Assembly: GCF_963921235.1 (NCBI RefSeq)
Contig: NC_086101.1
Coordinates: 28,892,001-28,956,000 of the forward strand
Source: Mobula hypostoma
Lineage: Eukaryota
DNA: 64,000 bases
Reading direction: 5' to 3'
This document shows, in pieces, positions 8,640 to 58,580 of this stretch. The translations under genes and the position numbers were made by a program. Below the pieces are notes generated by a model. It did not search any database. It saw only the letters and a list, made by a program, of their open reading frames with translations, and was not told the DNA's origin. Position 1 is the stretch's first letter. Each line of letters begins with the position of its first letter.

Positions 8640-9300
8640 TGAGCAGCTTCCCACGGGCTATTGGGAGGTTCCTGAAATTTACACTCGCCGAATTTGATGC
8701 AACACGACTGGAAGTGGTTTGGCTCCGCTCCCTCCCGCGATCTGCTGACACTCCACTCCCCCCGCAGTCCATTTCTGTCGAAGGATTTTCAGTTACTGGC
8801 TGCACCTGCACCGACTGGCCGCGTCTGTGAATCTAACTCCACCCTCAGCACTTCACTGACTAACGATCAGGGTTCAGTCGATGCGAGGAGTTGTCGCAAT
8901 GGAGAGCTGGACCGGACCGGTATCGCTCCTTGTCACCGCGTTATCTCTCTGCTCTGTCGCGGGAGGCCAGGCAGGTGAGGCGAGGGTATGTGACGGCGAT
9001 GGTCGGGGTTTGTGTCGGGAAATTCACCTTTAAATCTTTTGGACTTTCTGGCTGTCGCTCCATTAGACGGGAAGACGACCTCACCGCACTCCTGTGTTCT
9101 CATTTCACTCCTGTGAAATTTCTGGAGTCGATAAACTCGGGGCAAAATGATACTTGAATAGGTTTCACAGGTGGATAGGAATTGTCGCCAATTCCCAGAG
9201 GAAAGTCCCACAATCTTAACAGAGGCATCACATTAAAGCAATTAATCTGAGTTTAACTATCCTGTAACTGCCACGTTACGTCAGTCTGTTTCACAATACC
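8640..9300 (+). promoter_or_regulatory. CpG island / putative promoter around exon 1, with a perfect NF-kB site (GGAAAGTCCC, 9200-9209) and a CRE-like TTACGTCA (9276-9283)
   Basis: About 30 or more CpGs in 8641-9140 by manual count, against CpG-depleted old repeats nearby. GGAAAGTCCC is the reverse complement of the canonical kB site GGGACTTTCC. ATTGG at 8660. Confidence 0.55.
8899..8974 (+). CDS. Exon 1, signal peptide (25 aa) of the MHC class I-like gene
   Basis: ATG at 8899, hydrophobic core [12 protein letters not shown], small residues before cleavage (GGQA), strong donor CAG|GTGAGG at 8975. The phase-1 G joins AC of exon 2 to give D-SHSL, the typical class I mature N-terminus. Lies in a CpG-rich non-repeat island. 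Confidence 0.78.
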
Positions 9301-42300: not shown

Positions 42301-45300
42301 CCAACAGACTCCAACAACTATCTTTACTTTTCATCCTCCCACTCTGCCTCTTGTGGGACTCCACTACCTCTTTTCTGTGCTCTTTCTCTGTCACCTTTGC
42401 TGCGATGATGAGAATTTCTACACTGGTGCCCCGGAAATGTCTTCTGCTTCTCCTTGAACCTTGGTTTCCTCTCTATCATGGTGGACTTATGTTCCAGTAT
42501 GTTTGCCTCTGACTTAGAAGCAACTCTATAGTGGGAGTTGGTGCTCCTGTTTCCCTGCTGCCCTTGACCTCCTTTGTGCTGGGGTTTGGGTTGTTTTGTT
42601 GGATTGGCTTCAGTGAGTATCTGCTTAGGATTTTGTAAATGGCCAGAGCAGTGAAGCAAGTTTTCATAGTGTTGGTTGCTCGTGTTTGGGGAGCTAATAA
42701 AGGGGGGTGGGAGTGCTGCCTGATCCAGTAGGATGTCTGTTTGGATGTGTATTAATCCATTCAAGTGGCGAGTATACCATCAAACTCCCGAGTTGTGCGT
42801 TATAAATTGTGAGCATCCTTTGTTGTGTTCTGACACTCCTCTCTCTCTGTCCTTTTACTCAGACTCACACAGCTTGATGTATTACTACTTCCAATCCATC
42901 AACATTCCTGAAATGCCAGCTTTCTTCAGGATTGGGATGCTCGATGACTTGCAGATAGACTACTACGACAGCACACTCCGTGAAGTAGAAGTCAAGCACC
43001 AGTTGATCGCAGATGGCTTATCGACCAACTACCGGAAAGAACAGAAAGAAATAACCGACCAGTTTTATAATTTCATCTTGACAAATCTGAAGCAATTTGC
43101 CTTATTCATTAGTGAGTGTCTTTGATCTCCACTACCCTTTGAGTATCACAGTGACTTGCATATTGCCAATACTTTGATGTTCTATTAGATCTGATTATGT
43201 TGTATCCAGTTTGAAGTCCTTCACTCTTTCAAATCTCTCAAATCTCCATTCTGCTCTCTACCTTTCTTAACTCCAATTACAAGAATTCTATCCTAATCAT
43301 CTGGGTAAGTTCTGACCCTTCAAAATAAACTGATTATCCAGTCCTCATTCCCCACGGACCTCTTCAGAGAAACAGTGAAAATCAAACCCACTGTCCATAC
43401 AGGGTTTGCCTGGCTCAAACCCTAATCCTAAGCCTACTCCCCAACTCCAGACTTGGGGATGCTTCAGTCCAGGATGGTTGGAACTAAGTCGTCTATGGTT
43501 CTTATCTAGTCACCTGCCACAATGACGCTTTCCAGATCGAATTCGGTGCGGGGACTCCGTGCATTAGAACATAGAATGCTACAACACAGGAACAGGCCCT
43601 TTGGCCCAAAATGTTCTGCTGAACTAATTATATTAATAATCAAATGTCAAACTAATCTCATCCTTTCTGCCTACACAATGTCCATGTCCTGCTCGCCTAA
43701 GCTTCTTGAACACCCTCTTTGTATCTGCTACTACCACAACCCCTGGAAGCACAACTTAGGAACATGCCATTCTGTAATAGTCTTACCCTGCACATCTCCA
43801 TTGAACATACCCCCTTTTCCATGCCCTCTTGTATTAGACATTTCAACTGAGGGAAAAATAATACCAGCTGTCAACTTTAAAACAGAGAAAACAGCCCAAA
43901 TTGGTCAAATCACTTGTTATAGCATATGCCATCCAATCCAGGCAGCATCTGGTAAGCATCTTCTGCACCTACTCCAAAGCCTCACCGTCACAGAGTGACC
44001 AGAACTGCTGTGTGGCACACTCTGTGCTTATTGACACTGAATACAAACATGTTGCTTTCACAATTCTCCGCTGTAACTCTCTGCAGTGGACATGGTTCAG
44101 CGCAGACTGTACAGTGCAGTCTCTCACTGTGAGCCCCTGCTCTGACCCACATGTTGACAGAGTCCTTCAATGTTCCCCCTGCTTTGTATGTACAGTACTA
44201 TGCACTGCACAGTGTTTCAACGTGATCTCTGTACTGTGCACTCTGCATAATTCAAGCTCGAGTTTATTTCTGATCGTAGGCTGACATACACAGGGTACAA
44301 ATGCCATAAAATCACTGTTTTACAGCAGCATCATGGTATATTACAGGACATGTTAGCATGGAGTCAATTTTAAATAAATATGCACAACCAGCACATGTGC
44401 AAAGTAGTAGTAGTCGTAGTTGTAGTAGTAGTAATCATACTTTATTGATCCTGGGGGAAATTGGTTAATTGGAAATTGGAAAAAGGTATACAACAAAATT
44501 AATTTAACAATATTTGTGCAAGATTAAGAGCCAAGAATATAATCTAGGGTCTCGTTAAGGCTTTTCTGGTTGGTTAAAGAACCTGGTGGTATTGGGCATG
44601 GAGCTCTTGTTGGAGCCTGAGGTGTTAGTCCTTTGGCCTCTGTCCCTCCTTCCTAGTGGTAGCATCAAGAAGAGAGTATGTCCTGGATGATAGGGAGGGT
44701 GTGGCTCCTGATGATGGATGTTGTCTTCCTGGGACATTGTCTTTCGCAGATGTCCTCAACGATGGGGAGAGCTGTGCCTGTGATGGGCCTGGTTGAGCCC
44801 AGCACCCCCAGAGCCTTTTGTCTTTCAGGGCTTTGGAGTTTACCTACCTCCAAAGCTGTGATGTAACCAATCCAAATGCTTTTCACTGCACGTTTGAAAA
44901 CATTGCCATTCGTTAATGACAAATTGAATCTCTTTAAACTTTCCCCTCCCACCTTGCCGTGTAGACAGTTGCTCACATTGATTACTGATTCCACCAGACC
45001 CCGGTGATCTGTGCCACACCCTGACAAATGTTCTATATAGGACACTTCACCCCATGCTCTCGGCCTTAACTGTACACAGTCGCTGACCGTGACCCACTAC
45101 TTGGTGCACCTCTTAGTCACGTAGCATTTACGTATTTAGCAGACCATTATCTAGTATTGGAAGCTTCAGCCATTAATGTTAATTAATCTGTTGATAATTT
45201 ACAGGCTTCAGCTACATACAGGCACTCTGGGGCTGCACACAATCTGGAGATACGGTCAACGCGATTCTAAAAATCAACTTCCTGGATATCGGAGAGGTCA

Positions 45301-48300
45301 GCTGTGATATCAACACAGGGAAATGCACTGGCACCGGTTTCCTAGCAATGTTCAATGATCAATTGAGCCAATTCAGTTTCACTGACATGACTGCATTGAA
45401 GAGTAACTGCACTTGGTATTTGCAAAGGGCTGTTCAGCTTGGAAGAGAAGCATTGGAAAGGCAAGGCAAGTGGAACATCCTGCGATGGTGAGGGAACTCC
45501 CAATTCAGCAACATAAAGGATACCTCAGTCTGAGACGATTATGGGGCTCTGAGACCGAGATGGTGTGGGCTGTTATGATTCAGGATACTGAAGGATTTGA
45601 TGATCTAACAAATTGATGGTGTTCCCAATCTGGGACAGAGAGGGATCTCCTGATCTGGACAGTAAGGAAGCTTCCAATCAGAGATGCAGAGGGATCTCCT
45701 CATACGGGAAAGAGAGGGAGCTCCCAAAACAAAATGGTTAGGGGGTTTCTCAATCTGCAGTAATGAGGGATCTCCTAATTTGAAACAGTGAGTTGGTTGG
45801 AGTGTATGGGCTGCAGGCCTGGAGGTGGACTGTAAGCCCACGATTGGCTCCATTGCTTCTCTCTGACTGAGGCGTTGAGCAAGTTTGAAGTGGATGAGGC
45901 CAAGTGCGGAGGCCAGGCTGGTGTTTGGCGCCATCTGCTGTGTTTGGCTGGTATTCCTCTCCCTTTTACTAGCTGCTGTTGGAGGAAAGTGCAGGAGGCT
46001 TGGGTTCCACATTGCAGGGATTGATCGGTGAGGCTCGTGGTTGTGACTCTTTTTGGGGGACTTTAGGGTTCATGTATTTCTGGATTCTGGTTACCCTTTG
46101 TTTCCTGTTTCTAAGTGGTTTGATCAGGGTGCATCAGTGCGCACTGGGCGCTTCAGCGAAGACTGAACCTGCGGCCTGCATTTGGCTAGTGGCAAAGCAC
46201 TGAACTAAACTGAGTACACCTAGACTTGATAAAACCGTAAGATATAGAAGCAGAATGGGGCCATTTGGCGCATCGAGTCTGCTCTGCCATTTCATCATGC
46301 TGGTCCATTATCCCTCACAGCTCCAATGTCCTGCCTTCTCCCCATATCGCTTCATGTCGTGACTATAAAGAATCTATCAATCTCTGCTTTAAATATACTA
46401 AAGATGTGGCCTCCACAGTTGCCAAGTTGCCTGTAACAACGAATTCCACAGATGTACTGCTCTCCGGCTAAAGAAATATTTCCTGATCTCCATTTTAAAA
46501 GGATGCCCCTCTACTCTGAGTGTCACAGAAATTTACTATTGCTGATTAAACAAGGGCACAGACCCCAGTATTCAGTTTAATTACTTACTTACATGACCAT
46601 GGAGAGCCCACTAAAAGACTCTGCTAAAGTGAGCACAAGCATGGTCTTTTATTCCTTAAAATACATGCAATTCAGCAGTTCTCAGGAGTCAAGAGTTCCT
46701 GCATAGACCTTATTGACAAGATTCAGGATGCTTCCATACCTTACACAAACTTAGATACACTACACTCAGCCCCCTTCTTCCAGATCGTTAATGTATATCG
46801 TAAACAGTTGCAGGCCCAGCACAGACCCCAGCGATACACCACTCACCACTGACTGCCAACCGGAGAAACACCCAGGCATCCCAACTCTCTTCTTGCTATT
46901 AGTCAACCAATCTTCTATCCATGCTAATACATTAGCCCCAACTCTATTGTTCTATTTTGGTAAATTATCACCAAAACCTCTACTATAACTTCTGCCATTT
47001 CTTTCAGTACCCTAGGACTTATCTATCTTCCAGTCCACACGATTGCTCAGCACTACCTCTTTAGTGATAGCTAACTCCATCCATTTATGCTATGCCACCA
47101 TCCCTTTTTTTAAAATTTTTTATTTTTATTTGGATAAGGAATTCACAAGTATCATGTACTTTTTTCACATGTATAACCTTTTCCATTTTTTTATATGTAT
47201 AAAACTATAATTATTTATACATTCCTAAGTACACATTAAGATGATATAAAAAGAAATTGGACACTTAAATAGATAATTATGTGCAGTTGAAATTCTAATC
47301 TATTAGGCTAAGTAATGGTATTAGTTGTTAAGAAAAATAGTAATAATAGTGGATTAATAATAGTTTCCATATATCTCTTCTGGACCACTTCTTCTGGTCC
47401 AAAATGTTGTATGTAAGTCTATGTAACAACCATTGTAGGTGTTTATATCCTAACTTGTTCATGCTTGCTCCTGCCCCCAAACATAATTATCCAATCCCTA
47501 TGTACTTACTTACTTAATTTTATCATTTTTTATCCCTTTCCCAAATCTTTTCCTTTACTTGTGTTAATTCTCTATTTTCCAAAAAAAAAACAAAAACAGT
47601 AAACATTTAGACTAGGGGTGCTTACGTTAGCAATATTACTGTGTTGATGAGAAGAGCAGTATAAATCATTAGGAGAGTCATCTAAAGTCTGCTTGCTTTG
47701 GGGTTATATATTCCAGATTTGATAAAATTTTTCTTTTTGAATTCTCAGGGAGTAAGTCATCTTTTCCATTTTAAATATTTCCAAGATAATTTCATGCCAA
47801 TCTTCTAATGTAAGTGGTATCGGATTTAGCCACTTTCTAGTGATTGATTTCTTACTTGCCGCTAAAAGGGCCTGCGGCAACTTTATATCTTTCTTCTGTT
47901 CAAGAAACAATACATACCCCAAATACTGCGTCTCAAAATTCAGAGGTATCTGGGTCCTAAGTACCTTAACTAATGTTCTGTGAATACCTTTCCAATATAA
48001 ACTTAAGTTAGGGCAATCCCAGAAAATATGGAAATGATTTGCCTCCTTGGAGCTGCACCTTCTCCAACACGTCACGTTTGTGTCTTTATATTTTTCCTGG
48101 TATGGCGTCTTGAAGTATCTTATAATATTTTTACAACAATGTTCTCTCCAAGTCAAAGAATTAGTCGAAGATCACTGAAAGCTGCATATTTTCCCCCAAG
48201 CCTCCTCTGAAAGTACCAACCCGCTTCTTTCTGCCACTTCTCTTTAATATACAATGTGTTTACATTTTTAGCATGGGAGAGTGCATTATATAATCGAGAA

Positions 48301-51300
48301 ACTGATTTACTAGGTATTGAACTGCAAGTCGAATTCAGAATCTTGAAAAATTCTAATTCCACTGTTGATAGGTTTGTATATCTACAACTCTGGTTAACAT
48401 AGTGTCGTACTTGAAGGTACCTAAAAAAGTCGTTGTCTTCTAGGCCATGTTTGTCCTGCAGGATTTGGAAACTTTGTAATACTCTTTTATGTATAAATGA
48501 GAGGTAGGTTGTAAGACCTTCCTTTATCCATAGTTCAAATCTTTTATCTCCTCTGTTGGGAAGGAATTCGGTATCATATGCACACCATCTGAAAAGTTTT
48601 AACATGTTATTGATTCCACATGAATTAACCACCTTCTGCCATACGTTTACTGTAAGATTTATCCAACTGTTTTTAAACTTTTCCAATTGGGCCATCAATC
48701 CTTTGTCAGCTATTGAGGCCTGTAGAGGAAAACTGTCAACCAGTCCAAATTCTATTTCTTTCCATCTAGCCTTGTATTTCCCATTACACCAATGGAACAG
48801 AGGGGTTATCTGTGAGGCATAAAAATAATTTCTCAAGCAAGGAAGAACCATACCTCCTCCTTCCTTTCCTAACTGTAAGGTGTTATATCGAATTCTAGGT
48901 TTCTTTCCTTGCCAAATAAAGCAGGAAATCCATTTGTCCCATTCCCTAAATTGATTATCATCCACCTCCACAGGTAAAGGATGGAAAAGATACAGTAACC
49001 GACGGAGAATATTCATTTTTATAGTATTTATCCTTGAATTTAAACTTAAAAAGGGGATACGATTCCATCTATGCATATCTGCTATTATCTCTGAGATTAA
49101 TGGCCCATAATTTACCTGTGACAGCTTTGAAAGATCCTTCGGCAGGGTTATTCCTAAATATTTTAATGATTTGACTTCCCACTTAAGATCATATGTATCC
49201 TGCAATTTTTTGGATGGTGTATAATTTAGGGACATAACCTGCGTTTTCTTTACATTTATTTTATAACCTGATATTTTCCCAAAGTCATCCAACAGTGTAA
49301 ACAATCCTATAAATGATTTTTCTGGTTCACTCAGATAGACTAAAACATCATTTGCGAATAACGCCACTTTCTGTTCAATCCCTGCCACCTTGATACCTTT
49401 TACGATTTCGCTCTGTCTTATTAGTTGGGCAAGTGGTTCAATATACAGCACAAAAAGGAGAGGAGAAATTGGACATCCCTGTCTAGTGCTTCTCTCTAAA
49501 ATAAAGGAGTCAGAGAGGTCCCCATTTATCTTAATTCAAGCTGTAGGGCTGTCATATAGAGTCTGAATTACTTTAATAAACTTTTCTTGAAAGCCGAATC
49601 TTCCTAACACTCTGTATAGGAATGCCCAACTAACCGAATCAAAAGCTTTCTCAGCGTCTAGTCCTACTACCATTGTCTCTGTCTCGTTCTTATTAACTTG
49701 TTCTAATATGTGTAGAGTTCTCCTTACGTTGTCCTGTGTTTGTCTTTGTCGAATAAATCCAGTCTGGTCTAAATGGATTAGGCCAGGTAAAAGCTTTTCC
49801 AATCTGCGCGCTAATATAGATGTAAATAGTTTGTAATCTAAATTAAGAACACTAATTGGCCAATAATTGCCACATTCTAGTTTATCTTTACCCCCTTTAG
49901 GAATAACTGAAATAATTGCTTCTCTCCAGGAAGGTGGAGTTTCTCCTCTCTGCAAGATCCAATTAAAGGTGTTAAGTAGTAATGGGGCTAACTGTGACTT
50001 CAGCGATTTGTACCACTCTGAGGTAAACCCATCAGGACCTGGAGACTTTCCAGCCTTTAATCTAGAGATGGCCACATTCAGTTCTTTGGCAGTTACTGGT
50101 TCTAATAGGCTTTCATTTTGTAAATCTGTAAGTTTAGGTAGATCTAAAGAATTCAATACCCTGTCTATATAGGGCTCATTGGAGGCCCGGGTTTGGGAGT
50201 ACAGCTCTCGATAATATGTTTCAAAACTCTCTTGAATTTTCCCTATTGTATTCTCCACAAGCTTTGTCTTTGGATTCTTTATTTTATGAATTGTATTGTC
50301 TGCTTGTTGTTTTTGTAATTTATATGCTAATAATCTAGCTGATTTACCTCCTACTTCATAATTCTTTTGTCTCAGGTAAAGAAAATTTCTTTGAGTTTCC
50401 AATGTATAAATATCATCAATTTCACTTTGCAATTTTCTAATTTCCTGTTTTAAATTAGAATTACTTTTGTTGCTATCTACAACTTGAGTTGTTTTAGTTT
50501 TCCTTGAAGGTCTGCTACTTTTTGTGCATTGATTTTTTTCATGTGAGTGGTAATGGAAATAATTTTCCCTCTCAGTATAGCTTTCAGTGTATCCCATAAG
50601 ATCACTGGTGATGTTTCTCCCGTGTCATTAAGGTCTAGGTATTCTTTGATTTCTCCCATTAATCTCTCCATTACTTTCAGGTTATTGAGTATATGTGAAT
50701 TTAACCTCCACAGTGTTTTCCTCATTTTCCTTTCCAGGATTAGAGACATAGAGACTGGGCTATGATCCGACAGATCAATTGTTGCAATATTACAGTTTTT
50801 TATCCTGAGTCTATCTGTATTAAAGATAAAGAAATAGTCTGTCCTTGAATAGGCTGAATGAGGGAAAGAGTAATGTGTATAATCTTTACTAGTGGGGTGT
50901 AATTCCCTCCACACATCTATAATTCCCAACTCCTCCATCAATAAATTCATTTTCCGAGTCAGAGGTTTATTCTGAGTAACTATTCTTGAAGAATCTAATG
51001 CAGGATTTAACCTAATATTAAAGTCCCCTCCAGAGATTACTACCCCTTGATAACTGACCATTAGGTCAAAAATGTGTCTATAAAATGACCATTCACAACC
51101 TGGTGGAATATAAACATTCAGCACTGTTATTTCTGTACCTTCTATTCTTCCTGTAATTTTTACAAATCGTCCATCTTTGTCTTTAATCTCTGAAATATGT
51201 TCATAATTAAGAGTACTTGATACTAAAGTAGCTACCCCTCTTTTGTGGCTCAATTTATATGATGAATAAAATACATGCTTAAAGCCCATTCTTTTCAATT

Positions 51301-54300
51301 TTCCATGTTCGGATTGGCTCATATGTGTTTCCTGGAGTAAAGCTATTTGTGCCCTCTCTTTTTTCAATTTAGACATAATCTTATTTCTTTTAATTGGATT
51401 CAAAACCCCATTAACATTATAGGAAATTATTTTTACCAATTCAATTTGCATTTTTCTCTAGTAGAAAAAAAACACTCTCCTTTTCTAACGAAACAGTAAG
51501 CAATCCCTTCTCAACAGTAAACCAAAATATATAACCACACCCTAGACATTTTTGAATGTATAACATTTGAAAAATTTTCCCGACTTTGCACAGTGAGGCC
51601 TGAGCACCGACCCGCCTCAGTTCAGAGGGATAACCTCTATCTTCACCCTGTGTTAGAGGGCCCTCAGCAGTTTGAATAATCATAGAGAATTTTCTCCTAT
51701 TTATGTCTCGACCATATTGCTATCATTCAAGTTATTCCGTCTAGTTTATTTTCAGTTATCAGCTTTCATTTTACCTTTAAGTCTGATTTACTCTTTTCAG
51801 TCATTTCTCTTAATTAATCTGTATTCTCTGTACATTCGCGTCTGAATATTTGCAGCTTTTCCTTGTAGTTTGACACTCTGGTTCGTGTGGAGCATCCTCG
51901 CCACACTGGCTGCCTTGACTTCTGCGGAATCCCCTCCAGTAGCGACTCCGGTTGGGTGATAACTTTAATAGGTAGTCCCCAGTCCGCCAAGTCCAACATT
52001 GCCTCCTCCGCTGTAGCGTAAGTTTTTGTCCCTTCGTCGTAAAAGAGTCTCAGCCGAGCTGGATACAGGGTCTGAGATCTGATGTTGTTTTCCTTCAGGA
52101 CCCTCCGTGTTTCCGCATATTCTTTCCGTCTGGCAAGGATCCCCGGTGCGTAATCGTGGTCTAAACTGATTTTACAGTTGCTCCACATGAAACCTTTCTT
52201 TTGCCATGCACCTCTTCCTTCGTTCTGTAACTGAGAAATCTGACCAGAATCGATCTGGGCTGGGCGCCTGCTGGAGGCTGTGGTGCCAACGCACAGTGAG
52301 CCCTTTCTATCTGTAGGTCTTTTGTGTCCGGTATATCAAGGTTCTCTCTAAGCAGCTTCTCCACGAAGGGAATCATCAATCCGGGTTTACCTTCAGTTCC
52401 TTCGGGAACTCCGTAGATCCTCACATTTTCCCTTCTCGAGCGGCCTTCTTGGTCTCTTAGCTTCCACTGGAGCTGCTCTTGTAACTTTAGCATTTCTGCT
52501 ATCGCTTCCTCTGCGTTTCGTAGCTTCTCCTCAATTCCTACAATCCTCACTTCGGCTTCATCTATCCTCGAATTACTTTTTACTATTTCACCTTTAATAT
52601 CTTCCAGCTGTTTGTTGTTATCTTGTCGGAACTCGCGAATCTCTTCGAGAATCAAAGACAGATTCACCGATTCCTCCTCATTATCTCCATCCTGGCTAGC
52701 GGTGGGGGAACTAGGCCCGTCGCCTTGCTGCGTCTCTTTATATTTATCAGCCTTCGGAGCGGACTTTTTAATCTTGTTATTAGACATCATCCTTGCCCCT
52801 TTTATTAATATAGTTATACAATATTAAGAATTTGTCTAATTTCAATTTTGGGGCAGTTTACCCTCTTTTTTGTCGAGAGACCTTTTCCTTACGCCGCCAT
52901 TCCCTTGATGACCCCGCTACCATCCCTTTCAGTGTTATTTTAAATCAATTTTGGCCAGCTCCTCTCTCATGCCTCTGTAATTCTCTTTACTCCACTGTAA
53001 TCCTGATACATCTGACTTTAGCTCTCCTTCTCAAATTGCACGGTGAATTCTATTATATTATGATCACTTACCCCTAAGAGTACCTTTACCTTAAGCTCTC
53101 TAAACAATTCTGGTTCATTGCACAACACTCAATCCAGAATAGCTGATACCCCAGTGGACTCAACCATGAGCTGCTTTAAAAAGCCATCCGGCAAGCATTC
53201 TAGAAATTCCACTTCTTGGGATCCAGCACAAAACTGATTTTCCCAATCTACCTGCATATTGAAATTCCCCATGACTATTGTAACATTGCCCATTTGGCAT
53301 GCATTTTCTATCTCCCATTGTAATTTGTAGACCATATCCTTACTACAGTTTAGGGGTCTGTATATATCTCTCATCAGGGTCTTTTTACCCTTGAAGTTCC
53401 TTAGCTCTACCCACAATGATTCAATATCTTCTGACCCTACATCACCTTTCTAATGATTTGATTTTATTTTTTACCAACAGAGCAATGCCTCCACATCTGC
53501 CTACCCTTTTGATACAATGTGTATCCTTGAATGCTATTGCACACAAAATCATACATGCCAATCTGTAACTGTGCTACAAGTTCATCAACCTTATTCCAGA
53601 AGAGAACCCCTGCCCTCTCCACTAATTCCTTGGCCACACATACACCTGCCAAATCATACTATTCTTACCCTCACTGGCACGTGGCATGGGCAGAAATCCA
53701 GTGAGTACTACCCTGGAGGTCCTGTTTTACAGCTTTCTACACAGCTCCCTCAAATCTCTCTTCAGAACCTCCTCAACTTATCGACCCATGTCATTGGTGC
53801 CAAGATGCACCAAGATTTCTGGCTGCTCACCCTCCCTCCTGAAAATGCAATGGACCTGATCCGAGACATCCATGATCCAGGCAACTGGGAGGCAACATAC
53901 CACCTGGGTGTCACCATCGTGCCCACAGAATCTTGTCTCTGTTCTTCTGCCTGTGGAATTTCCCATCAACACTGCAGTCTTCTTCACCTCTCTGCTCTTC
54001 TGAGCCACAGCACCAGATTCAGTGCCAGAGAGGAGGTCACTATGGTTACACCCAGTAGGTTGTCCCCTTCAACAGTATCTAAAGTGGTACATTTATATTG
54101 AGGGGTATGACCACAGGTGTACTCTGCACTGGCTGAGCATTTCCCCTCCTTCTCCTGACAGTCACTTGTCTACCAATCTCCTACAACCAAGGGTGATTAC
54201 CTCCCTGTAGCTCCTATCTATCACTTCCTCTTTCTCCCATATGAAGCTAAGGTCAGTGAGCTGCAGCTCCAGTTCCTTAACACATTCTCCGAGGAGCCGC

Positions 54301-57300
54301 AGCTTGACGCACCTGGTGCAGATGTGTTTATCCGAGAGACTGGATGTCTCCCAGAATACTCACATCTCACACACAGTATGAGACACTGCCCCTGGAGTCA
54401 TTCTCACTACACTATGATGCCCTAACAGATAAGGAATGGACAATTAAGAACAAAAATACCCCTAATTGGATGTTTGATATCCTCTGTGTTGCTAGCTCAC
54501 TTTTTGCTGTTTGTGCAATCTGTTCTCTCTCTGCATGTTGGGTGTTTGATGTTTTCTTTGAACGGGTTCCTTGGTGCCTCTTTGTTCCTTTGCTGCATCA
54601 GAGGATAAACCTCAGAGTTGTATTCTGTATAAACACTTTGGTAATTAATCTACTTTGAATCTTTGAGTGAGGGCACTCCCAAAGGAGACATTGACTGATC
54701 TCCCGGTCTGGGGCAGTGAGGGACCTTCTGATCAATACTGCTGTGCTGAGGGCATTCTCCATCTTGCAGTTTGAGGATGATCTGAATTTGGGATATTGCA
54801 CGACAGCTGGACTGGGAACAGTGCCTGTGACCTTGATCTGGACCTATCCGATGAATGAACATAATCTCTGTCTGTAGTCTGCATGAGCTTGAGCTGGGGA
54901 GGCTGATTTCAGATTAGATGGTGAGTGTAATAGTGAGGCAGATCAGGTTCTGAGGCCGTGAAGGATGTGAGAGTAATCCCAACATTGAACACTGTAACTT
55001 CAGTCTGTAACGGTAAGGTAACATCAGCCTGTGTTGAGGTGGTGACATAATTTTTGATTCTTCCCCAGTTGCTCCAAAGACTCAGGTGTTGACAAGGAGG
55101 CCGACAGCTACTGAAGGCGAGAGTCTGTCGTGCATCATCACTCCCTTCTACCCCCGTGCTATCAATGCCACTTGGCTGAAGAATGGGCAGGTTGTCTCTG
55201 AGGGCTACAACGTGACTGTGCTACCAAACTACAATGATACATACTGGATGGAACTAGTCATTGAGCTGCAGGGCAACGACCCGAACATCTATACTTGTCA
55301 TGTCGTGCACAGCAGCCTGCCAAAGGCCCTGATGGTGAAGGGAGGTAGGTCATTGTATGGTACAGAATTTGCTTCATTCTGCCTGTGGTGGCTCATGGAC
55401 TCATGCAGCAGAGAAGGAGGCTCTTCAGCCTATCTGATTCATGCAAACCCGATTCATGCAAACCCTCTAGTTCTCAAAAACGCTTGGCCCGTCCCCTTCT
55501 TTAACTTGATGATTCAACTGCTCATCTAGATACGTCTTGAAAATTATGAAGGTCTCTGCCTCCACCATCTCCTCAGGCAGTCCATTCCCAAATCCAACAC
55601 CCCCTTGATGAAAGTATTCTTCTGTAAATTCCCTATAAACCTCTTAGTCATTATCTTAAACCTACCTCGAGTTATAGGCACCTTTACTACGGGGAAGGGT
55701 TTACTACTGTTCAAGTAAACACATGAAGTGGAAGCATAAACTGCAGCAAGTTAAACCTGTAGCATTCTTCAGAATCAGAATCAGGTTTATTGTTGCTGGC
55801 ATCTGTTGTGAAATTTGTTAACTTAGCAGCAGCAGAACAATGCAATGCATGATAATGTAGAAAAAATATAAAACAAGTAAATCAACTACAGTAATTATAT
55901 ATATGTATATTGAGCAGATCTTAAAATAGTGCAAAAACAGAAATAATATATATTTTAAAAAATTCTTCCAACATTTTCTATGTATTTCCTATCTACACCC
56001 CTAATAATTCTGTATAACTCCATCAAGTCCACCCTCAGTCTCCTCCCATCTAAGGAAAACAAAACCAGCATATCTATTCTCTCTTCCCATTCCATCTGAG
56101 CCACATTCCGGTGAATCTCCTCCGCACTCTGTCCAATGCAATCACATCTCTCCTCTGCTCTGGTGACCAGAACTGTAAACAATACTCAGAATGTAGCCTC
56201 ACCGGTGTTTTATAAAGCTGTACCATAATTCCCATGCCCTTGTATTCTATGCACTGATAACTGGTATCTCATACACTTCCTTCACCACCCTATTTACCTC
56301 TTTAAAAGACCTAATCAAGCATCTCCACCATAAAGCTGCACCATAAGTTCCCTTCTCTTGAATTCTATGCCCTGATCAGTGAAATCCAGCATCCTGTAGG
56401 CTATCTTCACAACCTTGTCCTCGACTTTGAACGACTTGCTCAAGTAGCCCCACTCCTTCTCTGAAAATTTCTTAATTCCAAGAACGTATCCCATTTCAAT
56501 TTTGGAAGTTATTATTTACTGTGCTCTTTTATCACTCAAATTAAATCTGTTCCTTCTGCTCACCAGATGTTACAGAAGCAGTTGAGCTGTTGGTCAAAGA
56601 AATATAATAAGAACTCAACAGAAATAACAACTAAGAAGCAATTGGGACTGTGGGCAGACCTGACTGTCAAGTCGTCACTGCCTGGCTGTTGGGTGTTTGA
56701 TTGTCATAGATTCATAGAATTCTGCAGCAGAGAAACAGACCCTTCAGTCCAACACGCCTTTGTCAATCAAGATTTCCATTCAAAGAAGTCCCATTTATCC
56801 TGGCCCATATCTCCCTAAACCCTTTAGATTCATGTACTGGTGGATGTATCTTGTAAAAGATGTTAACTTGTCTGCCTCAACCACTTCTTCTGGCACCCAT
56901 AAATTGACCATCATGTTGCCACTCAGGTTCCTGTTACATCTTTTCTCTCTTAACTTAAACCTATACCATCAGGAGCCCTGAAAAATTATTGTGCACTCTC
57001 TCTATGCCCCTCAAAATTTTATATACTTCTCTCTATAGCTCAGCCCCCTACACTCCAGGGAAAATAATCCCAGCCTATCTTGTCTCTCATTATTTCTCAA
57101 GCATTCCATTCCTGGCACCATCCTTGTGAATCTCCTCTGCATCCTTTCCATCCTAATGACATCCTTCCTTCCTCAAAGCACCTTCCATTCTCCTATCCTC
57201 CAATGTATAAGATACTACCCACCCAGGACTACCCTCCCCCACACACACCCCCGCCCCCGCTTCTCCCAGCTCCCATCAGGCACAGATACAAAAGCCTGAC

Positions 57301-57700
57301 AGAATGTACTACTATGATCAATGAACACTTCTGTCTTTCTCCTGTGAGAAAATTGAGTGGACCCAAACATAGTAAGATAGGCATCTGACCTCACAATCTA
57401 ACTTTTAATGGTCTTGCATCCTATTGCCAGCTAGCACCACATATCCTCTGTAAAAGTAATACATTACTCTGCATTCTGTTATTGTTTTCCCTTGTACAAC
57501 CTTAATATCCTGATGTAATGATCTGTATGGACAGAATGCAAACCATGTATTTCCACTGTACCTGGTAACTGGTGACAATAATAAAATAATTTATACATTT
57601 ACCGATCTTTACTTGGTGGACAGGAGTTGGTGAGCCCCATGCTGCAGGTCCTATGTTGGGGCTGATGACTGTGTTTGCGATCATCTTTGGAGTGATGTAG
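8899..57700 (+). CDS. Divergent non-classical MHC class I-like heavy chain, 5 coding exons: 8899-8974, 42863-43111, 45205-45465, 55069-55344, 57624-57700 (939 nt, 312 aa plus stop)
   Basis: Manual exon assembly. All four introns are phase 1 and the joined frame is open: leader [25 protein letters not shown] / alpha1 [23 protein letters not shown] / alpha2 [31 protein letters not shown] / alpha3 [29 protein letters not shown] / TM-like tail. The leader-to-alpha1 link across about 34 kb is the least certain junction. Confidence 0.88.
10648..11254 (+). repeat. 5' LTR of the Gypsy element
   Basis: Direct repeat of 23204-23613 plus 26352-26591. Termini cgtaggg...gttaca. Confidence 0.9.
11258..11267 (+). 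other. Primer binding site, tRNA-Pro type (TGGGGGCTCG)
   Basis: 3 nt after the 5' LTR. Identical to the first 10 nt of the MLV tRNA-Pro PBS TGGGGGCTCGTCCGGGAT. Confidence 0.8.
11326..12686 (+). pseudogene. Gypsy gag with PNMA-like N-terminal and capsid domains and a CCHC zinc knuckle, frameshifted
   Basis: [21 protein letters not shown]; [34 protein letters not shown]; [14 protein letters not shown]. Confidence 0.85.
12805..13440 (-). mobile_element. CR1 3' fragment nested in the Gypsy gag-pol junction
   Basis: (catagaa)n tail at 12804-12817; ORF 12866-13438 with [11 protein letters not shown]. Confidence 0.9.
13473..16284 (+). mobile_element. CR1 LINE (EN-RT-3' tail) nested inside a minus-strand CR1
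   Basis: ORFs 13441-13752, 13895-14389, 14608-15159, 15269-15496 and 15503-16210. Tail tttctatggtttctatgg at about 16268-16284. Confidence 0.9.
16285..18360 (-). mobile_element. CR1 LINE EN-RT portion
   Basis: ORFs 18038-18493, 17117-18034, 16571-17089 and 16134-16694. Confidence 0.9.
18361..22628 (+). pseudogene. Gypsy pol (protease, dUTPase-like insert, RT, RNase H, integrase), many frameshifts and stops
   Basis: AILDT(R)SQVTLLY at about 18420-18465; [24 protein letters not shown](T)[40 protein letters not shown]. Confidence 0.9.
19568..19996 (-). mobile_element. Short CR1 3' fragment inserted in the Gypsy RT
   Basis: (caataga)n tail. The Gypsy frame PDQYTV|PRAEDAL rejoins across it, with ggtc duplicated. 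Confidence 0.85.
23190..23203 (+). other. Polypurine tract
   Basis: ggtgggggggagaa immediately before the 3' LTR. Confidence 0.75.
23204..26591 (+). repeat. 3' LTR of the Gypsy element, split by a CR1 insertion (LTR parts about 23204-23613 and 26352-26591)
   Basis: Collinear with the 5' LTR on both sides of the CR1. Ends ggccgttata followed by the TSD CACA. Confidence 0.88.
23614..26345 (-). mobile_element. CR1 LINE (EN-RT-3' tail) inserted in the Gypsy 3' LTR
   Basis: 559-aa ORF 24644-26323, plus 24171-24719 and 23808-24164; (catagaa)n tail. Confidence 0.93.
26843..32126 (+). mobile_element. Full-length L1-clade LINE (ORF1 from 26997, ORF2 from 28387), degenerate; 16-bp TSD ggaatagaatgaggag
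   Basis: TSD at 26827-26842 and 32127-32142. Coiled-coil ORF1 with [15 protein letters not shown]; APE endonuclease ISFNVNG..LQE..SDH; RT; A-rich 3' end. Confidence 0.92.
30462..31171. mobile_element. Probable solo LTR (710 bp) inserted in the L1 RT
   Basis: Termini cgtaac...cttaca, flanked by catg/cgtg (consistent with a CpG-decayed cgcg TSD). L1 frame KLACY|ADDILIYL rejoins across it. Confidence 0.7.
32325..34288 (-). mobile_element. Rex1/Babar-type LINE, 5'-truncated
   Basis: ORFs 33704-34441 and 32453-33700: [50 protein letters not shown]. Confidence 0.88.
34560..34955 (-). mobile_element. Rex/Babar 3' fragment
   Basis: [31 protein letters not shown]; (caatt)n tail. Confidence 0.75.
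35960..39400 (-). mobile_element. CR1 LINE with ORF1 esterase, EN, RT and 3' tail; internal deletions
   Basis: ORFs 39071-39436 ([11 protein letters not shown]), 38521-38976, 38176-38442, 37715-38110, 36890-37693, 36401-36850 and 36039-36500. Confidence 0.9.
40780..41410 (+). mobile_element. Rex/Babar 3' fragment
   Basis: [26 protein letters not shown]; (aattc)n tail at about 41385-41410. Confidence 0.75.
41480..42110 (-). mobile_element. CR1 3' fragment
   Basis: (cataagac)n tail and homology to the other CR1 3' ends in the window. Confidence 0.7.
42863..43111 (+). CDS. Exon 2, MHC class I alpha1 domain (83 aa)
   Basis: Polypyrimidine acceptor ctctctctgtccttttactcag and donor A|GTGAGT. Translation [83 protein letters not shown] contains the class I SHSL-Y and G-x-x-DD-x-Q-x-x-Y-YDS motifs. 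Confidence 0.93.
45205..45465 (+). CDS. Exon 3, MHC class I alpha2 domain (87 aa)
   Basis: Not in the ORF track. Acceptor ttgataatttacag. Translation [87 protein letters not shown] has Q-x-x-x-GC and C-x-x-x-L-x-x-x-x-x-x-G-x-x-x-L-E-R, the canonical C101-C164 equivalents. Donor AAG|GCAAGT (GC-AG intron). Confidence 0.9.
45480..45790. repeat. Degenerate minisatellite with a period of about 25 bp (about 12 units, core GAGGGATCTCC)
   Basis: The core recurs at about 45490, 45640, 45689, 45714, 45740 and 45765, with more diverged units between. Confidence 0.6.
47108..52918 (-). mobile_element. Full-length L1-clade LINE, antisense in intron 3; 11-bp TSD accatcccttt
   Basis: TSD at 47097-47107 and 52919-52929. 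ORF1 52790-51814 (frameshift). ORF2 pieces 51451-50477 (EN), 50597-49536, 49451-48153 (FANDV at the YADD position) and 48156-47704. T-rich tail at 47108. Confidence 0.93.
52930..54400 (-). mobile_element. Decayed CR1 (ORF1 esterase and EN) that hosts the L1; continues at about 46775-47096
   Basis: [12 protein letters not shown] (53778-54008) and [14 protein letters not shown] (53129-53416). Confidence 0.75.
55069..55344 (+). CDS. Exon 4, alpha3 Ig C1-set domain (92 aa)
   Basis: Acceptor ttttgattcttccccag and donor GAG|GTAGGT. Translation [92 protein letters not shown] has C1-set motifs C..FYP..W..LPN..YTC-x-V-x-H-x-SL. Confidence 0.95.
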
Positions 57701-57736
57701 AGGTGCAGCAAGGAGAGAACCAAGACATCACTGGAG
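57624..57736 (+). CDS. Exon 5, connecting peptide plus hydrophobic segment, with in-frame TAG at 57698-57700
   Basis: Phase-1 frame reads [37 protein letters not shown]. An alternative in-frame acceptor lies at 57647. Donors GAG|GTGGGT (57737) or GTGG|GTAAAC (57741). Confidence 0.75.
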
Positions 57737-57826
57737 GTGGGTAAACGTACAGATGCCTTTGTTAAACCTGCTTGCTGTGACAGTATTAGACTGTACATTC
57801 AATCTCCTCTCTTTTCTGCTTTGCAG

Positions 57827-57925
57827 ATCAGCATTTGGCTCTAACTCAAGCACAGTTCTGAACACAGGGTGCAGCTTCAAACAGGTTTTTTTGATGAGTG
57901 ACCGCACACCTCAGCAAGCTTAGTC
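57827..57925 (+). other. Probable terminal exon (former cytoplasmic tail, now 3' UTR); 3' end undefined
   Basis: Strong acceptor tctcctctcttttctgctttgcag about 90 nt after the exon 5 donors. It is followed at about 57925 by the tail of an antisense Rex/Babar LINE. Confidence 0.5.
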
Positions 57926-58580
57926 AGAATAAGGATCAGATTTAATATCACTGGCATAGATCGTGAGATTTGTTAACTTTACGGCAGCAGTACAATGAAA
58001 TTGACAATAAATAAAAAACTGAGTTACACAAAGTATATATATGGCTGTTAAGTTAAAATAAGTAGTGCAAGATAACAGAAATAAAAAAAGTAGGAAGTAG
58101 TGTTCATGGGTTCAATGTCCATTGATAAATCGGCTGGCAGAGGGGAAGAAGCTGTGCCTTCAGGCTTCTGCGCCTCCTTCCTGATGGCTCCAGTGGGAAG
58201 AGGGCATGTCCTGGGTGGTGGTGGATGTAGCCTTCCTAAGGCATCGCTCCTTGAAGATATTTTGGATACTATGGAGGCTGGTACCCCGATAGATCTGACT
58301 AATTTTACAAGTTTCTGCAATTTATTTCAATCTTGTCTAGTTGTCCCTCATAACAGATGGTGATGCAGCGAGTCAGAATGCTCTCCATCGTATATTTGTA
58401 GAAGTTCTCGAGTGTTTTAGTTGACCTACAAAATCACCTCAACCTCCCAATGAAATACAGCTGCTGTCTTGGCTTCTTTATAACTGCATCCTCAGAGATG
58501 TTGACACCTAGGAACTTGAAATTGCTCATTCTCTCCACTTCTGATCCCTCTATGAAGATAGGTTTAGCGTTACAACCACT
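57925..58580 (-). mobile_element. Rex/Babar 3' fragment just downstream of the MHC-like gene
   Basis: MQKLVKLVRSI.GVPASIV.. (58048-58320); (cagaat)-type tail at about 57925. Confidence 0.65.

Follow-up and report, generated by a model that had tools for sequence, protein, structure and literature searches.

We analysed a window of 64,000 nucleotides (nt) from the devil ray Mobula hypostoma (NCBI RefSeq assembly GCF_963921235.1, contig NC_086101.1, positions 28,892,001 to 28,956,000 of the forward strand). By "the window" we mean this whole stretch, and coordinates are counted from its first letter. It carries one gene of the major histocompatibility complex (MHC) class I type on the plus strand, and the remainder consists of repeats. 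The spliced product has 318 residues and comes from five coding exons, each of them open. It ends at a TAG stop codon (57698..57700, +) directly behind a stretch of 15 hydrophobic residues. Comparison with relatives indicated that this tail-less ending is an old family trait of elasmobranchs, and it probably serves as a signal for a glycosylphosphatidylinositol (GPI) anchor. An original prediction, made from the letters of the window, had already read the ending as a GPI signal, and our result for this gene is mostly confirmatory.

The junctions between the coding exons are all of phase 1. The leader exon (8881..8974, +) encodes a hydrophobic signal peptide of 31 residues plus one carried G and is followed by a GT donor at 8975. 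It was found by tblastn with the leader of the annotated M. hypostoma protein P0155 (97% identity) and sits 34 kb upstream of the alpha1 exon. The alpha1 exon (42863..43111, +; phase 1 to 1, donor GTGAGT) is 95% identical to P0155 and has a weak Pfam MHC_I match (E=0.004). The alpha2 exon (45205..45465, +) ends at a GC donor (gcaagt, 45465|45466). A loose end of a high-depth RNA contig of 932 nt (X10 record 9) reads ...GAAAGGCAAG joined to TTGCTCC of alpha3. Thus, the 9.6-kb intron between alpha2 and alpha3 is a real GC-AG intron. The alpha3 exon (55069..55344, +; 276 nt) encodes an immunoglobulin C1-set domain (Pfam C1-set, E=1.3e-13). The last coding exon follows the acceptor cag|GAGTTGG at 57623|57624 and takes over a phase-1 G from the alpha3 exon. 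Its coding part (57624..57697, +) supplies the connecting peptide, in which the small residues G-V-G occur, then EPHAAGP as spacer and a hydrophobic end of 15 residues, a putative GPI attachment signal with the architecture that had been predicted. Behind the TAG lie 36 nt of untranslated exon (57701..57736, +), reading RCSKERTKTSLE and holding the purine-rich motif GCAGCAAGGAGAGA at 57705-57718, and then the donor GAG|GTGGGT at 57736|57737. An intron of 90 nt (57737..57826, +; GT..AG) interrupts the 3′ untranslated region. The last, untranslated exon (+) starts at 57827 and runs to 57997 as far as contigs reach, and AATAAA signals are present at 58006-58015.

The exon limits at the 3′ end were examined by comparing contigs from four public runs with positions 55000-58400. 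X10 and X11 are RNA-type runs (organism A) and two of the four are DNA runs; X5 represents organism B. The joints 55344|57624 and 57736|57827, both GT..AG, occurred in the RNA-type contigs of X10 and X11 and in neither DNA run, so the exon limits are real. X10 record 14 is colinear with the genome over 57827-57997 without any further splice, and 57736|57827 was the last junction seen. The stop lies 36 nt ahead of this junction and thus, as predicted, within 50-55 nt of it. The prediction had allowed a distance of 36-40 nt; the RNA joint gave the lower value, and neither the donor at 57740, which would give the 40-nt alternative, nor another candidate donor at 57884 was used in the RNA contigs. 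Three contigs had the TAG intact: X10 record 14 (depth 2133), which differs from the window at 57682 and 57692, and X11 record 19 and the DNA contig X1 record 8, both free of differences. The stop at the end of the hydrophobic segment, as originally described, was therefore read in independent DNA and RNA contigs. In X5, no difference at the stop was among the differences listed, which is not strict proof. These runs diverge from the window by 2-4% in introns and show M. hypostoma-type residues (E to K at 55119 and V to M at 57692), which makes them independent of the assembly. The devil-ray gene is intact and expressed.

Relatives were collected by a library-wide search with the alpha3 exon, followed by two full-length searches. 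In the alpha3 search, close relatives terminated 25-27 residues past alpha3. The full-length searches returned annotated proteins of 309-321 residues from rays and skates (Mobula birostris, M. hypostoma, Hemitrygon, Hypanus, Pristis, Amblyraja, a second skate and Narcine) and from eight shark genera. The window product was 95% identical to P0155, 84-86% identical to four M. birostris paralogues and 62% identical to an older paralogue, P0151. Its identity with the shark proteins was 38-43%, including 39% over 263 residues with the nurse-shark protein P0175, which is identical to chain A of PDB entry 8GM8. Among PDB entries, 8GM8 was by far the best match for P0155 (E=2.9e-59; the next entry, 9CH4, had 4e-28). 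In a maximum-likelihood tree with tailed class I proteins as outgroups, the family, 8GM8 included, formed one monophyletic clade with 100/99 support. The window gene fell with P0155 inside a Mobula-specific clade. The window gene also has the architecture of leader, alpha1, alpha2 and C1-set alpha3 with phase-1 junctions. By sequence comparison, it is a member of the elasmobranch CD1-like MHC class Ib family represented by 8GM8 (the 8GM8 family below). The crystallised construct ends after alpha3 (265 residues) and is uninformative on the anchor, but close shark relatives of the crystallised protein share the tail-less end.

The 8GM8 family is probably the lineage called UFA. UFA and UGA have been described as CD1-like, lipid-binding elasmobranch lineages with crystal structures, which are cited as unpublished work only (PMC10751288, PMC12562908), and UFA is expected in the MHC class Ib cluster beside UDA and UEA (PMC10751288). 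The PDB titles carry no lineage names that would separate UFA from UGA. In our literature search there was neither a primary paper on UFA or UGA nor any reference to the PDB entries or to the way the proteins are anchored. The tail-less ending is very likely already known to those who discovered the lineage.

All 25 full-length members, from seven ray or skate and seven shark sources, stop at the homologous position without a single cytoplasmic residue. The endings follow the pattern ...GGVGEP(H/R)xAGP(M/L)LGLM...FGVM in rays and ...SG(V/I)xGxSExIxSGPVLGLL...GVI in sharks, and skates end in ...GGVGGPHDAFGASYMLVLMATLVMIVGTL. When the 25 members were scanned, the hydrophobic core comprised 13-15 residues behind a conserved Pro, or 16 in skates, which are without that Pro. 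Its mean Kyte-Doolittle hydropathy was 1.9-2.9; the window gene has 15 residues with a mean of 2.44, and then the stop. A small-x-small tripeptide was present 22-28 residues from the end in every member by a rule-of-thumb scan, which is not a trained predictor; in the window gene the same scan placed G-V-G 24 residues from the end, with EPHAAGP as spacer. Comparatively, the membrane spans of tailed class I relatives have 22-25 residues and end in W plus a basic cluster, with boundaries such as ...VFVW-RKRQQ (P0143), ...ICMW-RRKRR (P0136) and ...LLRW-KKRRQ (P0112).

The nucleotide sequences gave the same picture. The original prediction had called for TAG to be compared with TGG in other reads and in orthologues, and TAG was found throughout: at the homologous site in the genomes of Mobula, Pristis, Amblyraja, Heptranchias and Chiloscyllium and in skate transcripts, including one from a second skate. 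The region behind the stop is built alike in all five species: a conserved GT donor opens a short intron, which closes with a conserved acceptor. The last coding exon has 113 nt in both Mobula (the window) and Pristis, with 36 nt from stop to junction and a 3′ untranslated intron of 90 nt and 85 nt, respectively. The corresponding values are 127, 41 and 95 nt in Amblyraja, 127, 41 and 123 nt in Heptranchias, and 128, 42 and 108 nt in Chiloscyllium. In the skate transcripts L004 and L005, the splice lies at the equivalent site. As the truncation and the spliced untranslated remnant are common to sharks, skates and rays, they predate the shark-ray split. On this comparative evidence, the stop is an ancient trait of the family, fixed before sharks and rays diverged.

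This age bears on how the stop arose. The original prediction held that a former tail had been cut by one substitution, TGG to TAG. A TGG to TAG origin is plausible, considering that tailed relatives have Trp and a basic cluster at the matching boundary. However, the change was not recent, since the stop is present in 25 of 25 full-length members and TAG in five genomes and a skate transcript. Nor does a single change suffice: the hydrophobic stretch of 13-16 residues is much shorter than the spans of 22-25 residues in tailed relatives, which implies that more than one change separates the tailed and tail-less forms.

We infer from these features that the product is most likely GPI-anchored, and we hold this reading with moderate confidence. 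The last coding exon is a homologue of the exon that encodes the membrane span in other class I genes. The amber stop became fixed ahead of the divergence of sharks and rays and terminates the protein right behind a hydrophobic stretch of 13-16 residues, and the start of the former cytoplasmic tail and the short intron would persist only as a spliced 3′ untranslated region. The junction, 36-42 nt behind the stop, is presumably too near to trigger nonsense-mediated decay. The product shows four features of GPI-anchored proteins, which is why this form of anchoring appears most likely: a signal peptide, a candidate small-x-small site (G-V-G, some 24 residues ahead of the C-terminus), a putative polar spacer, and a short hydrophobic C-terminus without cytosolic residues. 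The protein would be cleaved near G-V-G in the endoplasmic reticulum and transferred to a GPI anchor. The outcome would be a tail-less antigen-presenting molecule residing in lipid rafts.

Several points weigh against this reading. GPI attachment is predicted from sequence, and the evidence for the omega site comes from a rule-of-thumb scan. The uncharged run, when G, A and P are included, extends over 16-21 residues and could serve as a short tail-less membrane span. In some members a charge lies close to the last residue (...MMIKVV with K, ...LMRGMV with R and ...IIAGEV with E); charged residues near the C-terminus are tolerated in GPI signals. The 50-55 nt rule of decay derives from mammals. 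In addition, the label UFA, which is the probable one, goes back to mentions of unpublished work only.

The main rival follows from the second of these points. The hydrophobic end might remain uncleaved and act as a very short type I anchor without cytoplasmic residues. The length of the uncharged run would allow this, as would the homology of the exon with transmembrane exons of class I genes, tailed relatives having W and basic residues at the matching place. However, the hydrophobic core behind the conserved Pro has 13-15 residues against 22-25 in those relatives, there is no flanking basic residue to fix the topology, and small-x-small sites lie at a GPI-typical distance in all members. 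We consider a tail-less span possible but clearly less probable than a GPI anchor, perhaps a one-in-four matter.

It is much less probable that the product is a secreted soluble protein, with the hydrophobic end removed or not retained. An annotated Narcine isoform, P0166, is without the hydrophobic stretch, and the human class I-like allele MICA*008 is initially made as a soluble truncated protein (PMC10316631). For a secreted protein, however, it would be pointless to keep a hydrophobic 15-mer throughout elasmobranch history. Furthermore, uncleaved hydrophobic ends normally cause retention or degradation, which also counts against a secreted form. We regard secretion as improbable.

Slightly more doubtful still is the idea that the UAG is recoded, either by occasional readthrough or by adenosine-to-inosine (A-to-I) editing of UAG to UGG, so that a minor membrane-spanning isoform with a basic tail would exist beside a GPI-anchored main form. 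In a variant of this idea, which we find equally doubtful, the purine-rich sequence and the short intron behind the stop would serve recoding that is lineage-specific and of low level. Some observations are in line with recoding. The stop is TAG, and never TAA or TGA, in six of six DNA or RNA sequences; with six related sequences, however, this invariance is not significant. Past the stop, every species keeps an open frame of 12-14 codons up to the end of the exon, and conservation is equal in the exonic sequence before and after the stop (mean identity 0.61 each, against about 0.51 for shuffles).

The details of the post-stop region speak against a translated tail. From TAG to the purine-rich motif there are 9 nt in sharks and skate and 4 nt in Mobula and Pristis; comparison of the window with the sequences L001, L002, L003 and L006 traced this to a 5-nt deletion right after TAG that is common to the two rays and not present in skate or sharks. 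The phase of the junction also differs among species, and the hypothetical readthrough tails, of 14-43 residues, are unrelated. Because the deletion shifts the frame and the junction phases differ, the post-stop frame is not conserved. The differences between Mobula and Pristis in the post-stop codons are nearly all amino-acid changing. Across the five species compared, we found no protein-level constraint or conserved frame downstream of the stop. The original prediction had seen a basic stop-transfer cluster behind the stop as the trace of a former tail. The reading RCSKERTK did not hold as an inherited frame because of the frame shift in Mobula and Pristis; it derives from the purine-rich motif, which is conserved as nucleotides.

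Neither the local structure nor the RNA contigs gave recoding further support. The TAG was unpaired in the consensus fold, and the local fold was no more stable than shuffles (z = -0.10). The base after the stop is a purine in four of five species, and a purine at this place is not known to favour readthrough. No G was seen at 57699 in the RNA contigs, which read A, at the level of contigs, where rare editing is below resolution. Together, the data argue against a readthrough tail conserved throughout the family. A null allele or an assembly error, which had also been raised as alternatives, can practically be dismissed, and so can a pseudogene: the stop inside a transmembrane-type exon, and nothing further, would suggest one of them, but it is found in independent DNA and RNA contigs and in equivalent form in every relative. 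Moreover, no other exon is interrupted, and a spliced transcript is present in abundance.

The conservation behind the stop seems to have another source. The identity of 76-80% between Mobula and Pristis could not be taken as strong constraint, since a neutral upstream intron is already 68-70% identical in this pair; therefore, only the comparison of sharks with rays is informative. In that comparison the distant upstream intron was at background, and the post-stop region gave a modest signal (0.58 against about 0.5 for shuffles). This suggests modest RNA-level constraint on the post-stop piece, perhaps because a small exon has to be defined between introns of 2-34 kb. The region of the motif is probably a remnant of the start of the cytoplasmic tail, now kept at the RNA level. 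RNAalifold paired the motif with the polypyrimidine tract of the 90-nt intron, with weak covariation.

A GPI-anchored product would have counterparts among the class I-like molecules of mammals. The mouse Qa-2 molecules (H2-Q7/Q9) have an early stop in the transmembrane exon, a short hydrophobic GPI signal and vestigial tail exons downstream. Like the window gene, they are class I genes with an early stop in the transmembrane exon. However, the Qa-2 truncation is of independent and much younger origin, the molecules present peptides and have no CD1-like groove, and the GPI anchor is proven there and predicted here. ULBP1-3 and RAE-1 are GPI-anchored class I-like ligands of NKG2D. They differ from the ray gene, which retains a canonical C1-set alpha3, in being without an alpha3 domain and beta2-microglobulin. 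MICA*008 is truncated in the transmembrane region and reaches the cell surface because it acquires a GPI anchor (PMC10316631). This allele arose by a frameshift, is confined to one species and follows a non-standard anchoring route, whereas the stop of the ray family is fixed across a vertebrate subclass.

NCBI labels several family members 'CD1d-like' or 'CD1c-like'. Mammalian CD1b, CD1c and CD1d cross the membrane and carry a tyrosine motif in the cytoplasmic part, by which they are directed to endosomes. In contrast, the 8GM8 family is without any cytoplasmic residues, so endosomal sorting by a tyrosine motif would be unavailable to it. If the GPI reading is true, a CD1-like, supposedly lipid-binding lineage as old as the elasmobranchs has been GPI-anchored throughout its history and works without the cytoplasmic motif by which most mammalian CD1 molecules reach the endosomes where they are loaded with lipid. 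This would bear on the site and manner of ligand uptake by the earliest CD1-like molecules. In the improbable case of recoding, a single gene would make a lipid-presenting molecule in two forms, one with a GPI anchor and a minor one that spans the membrane and bears a tail. The locus also illustrates cleanly how the exon structure of a former tail appears to survive as a spliced 3′ untranslated region, with the junction 36-42 nt from the stop.

Copy numbers in the family differ between rays and sharks. The family is expanded in stingrays and devil rays, with at least six annotated copies in M. birostris and six in Hemitrygon, in clades specific to the species groups. The window gene belongs to this ray-specific expansion, whereas sharks gave one match per species. 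An older pair of paralogues, P0151 and P0002 (ending ...MMIKVV), predates the split of Mobula and Hemitrygon. Isoforms also vary: P0001 and P0167 (231 residues; Hemitrygon and Hypanus) are without the alpha2 exon and keep the same hydrophobic end, and the Narcine isoform P0166 mentioned above terminates without it.

At 55306, within the alpha3 exon, the window has T (Val, in CHVVHSS) and all four public runs have A, and relatives all have Glu, Lys or Gln. Either this T is a private variant or the assembly has a wrong base here.

Repeats surround and interrupt the gene. The segments 57964-58400 and 55798-56025 are copies of one dispersed repeat, with contig depth in the thousands in DNA and RNA runs and many joints between them. 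Because of the copy at 57964-58400, the contigs leave the 3′ end of the transcript near the AATAAA signals undefined. Intron 1 (8975-42862) is packed with retroelement open reading frames (ORFs). An ATG ORF at 42405-42479 resembles a leader with a phase-1 donor and proved to be a decoy, the real leader being at 8881-8974. The intron between alpha2 and alpha3 contains, on the minus strand at 48156-52790, a long interspersed nuclear element with long ORFs. Endonuclease-like and reverse-transcriptase-like ORFs of 324-460 residues and an ORF1-like ORF of 209 residues were recognised in it, and it may be a young element.

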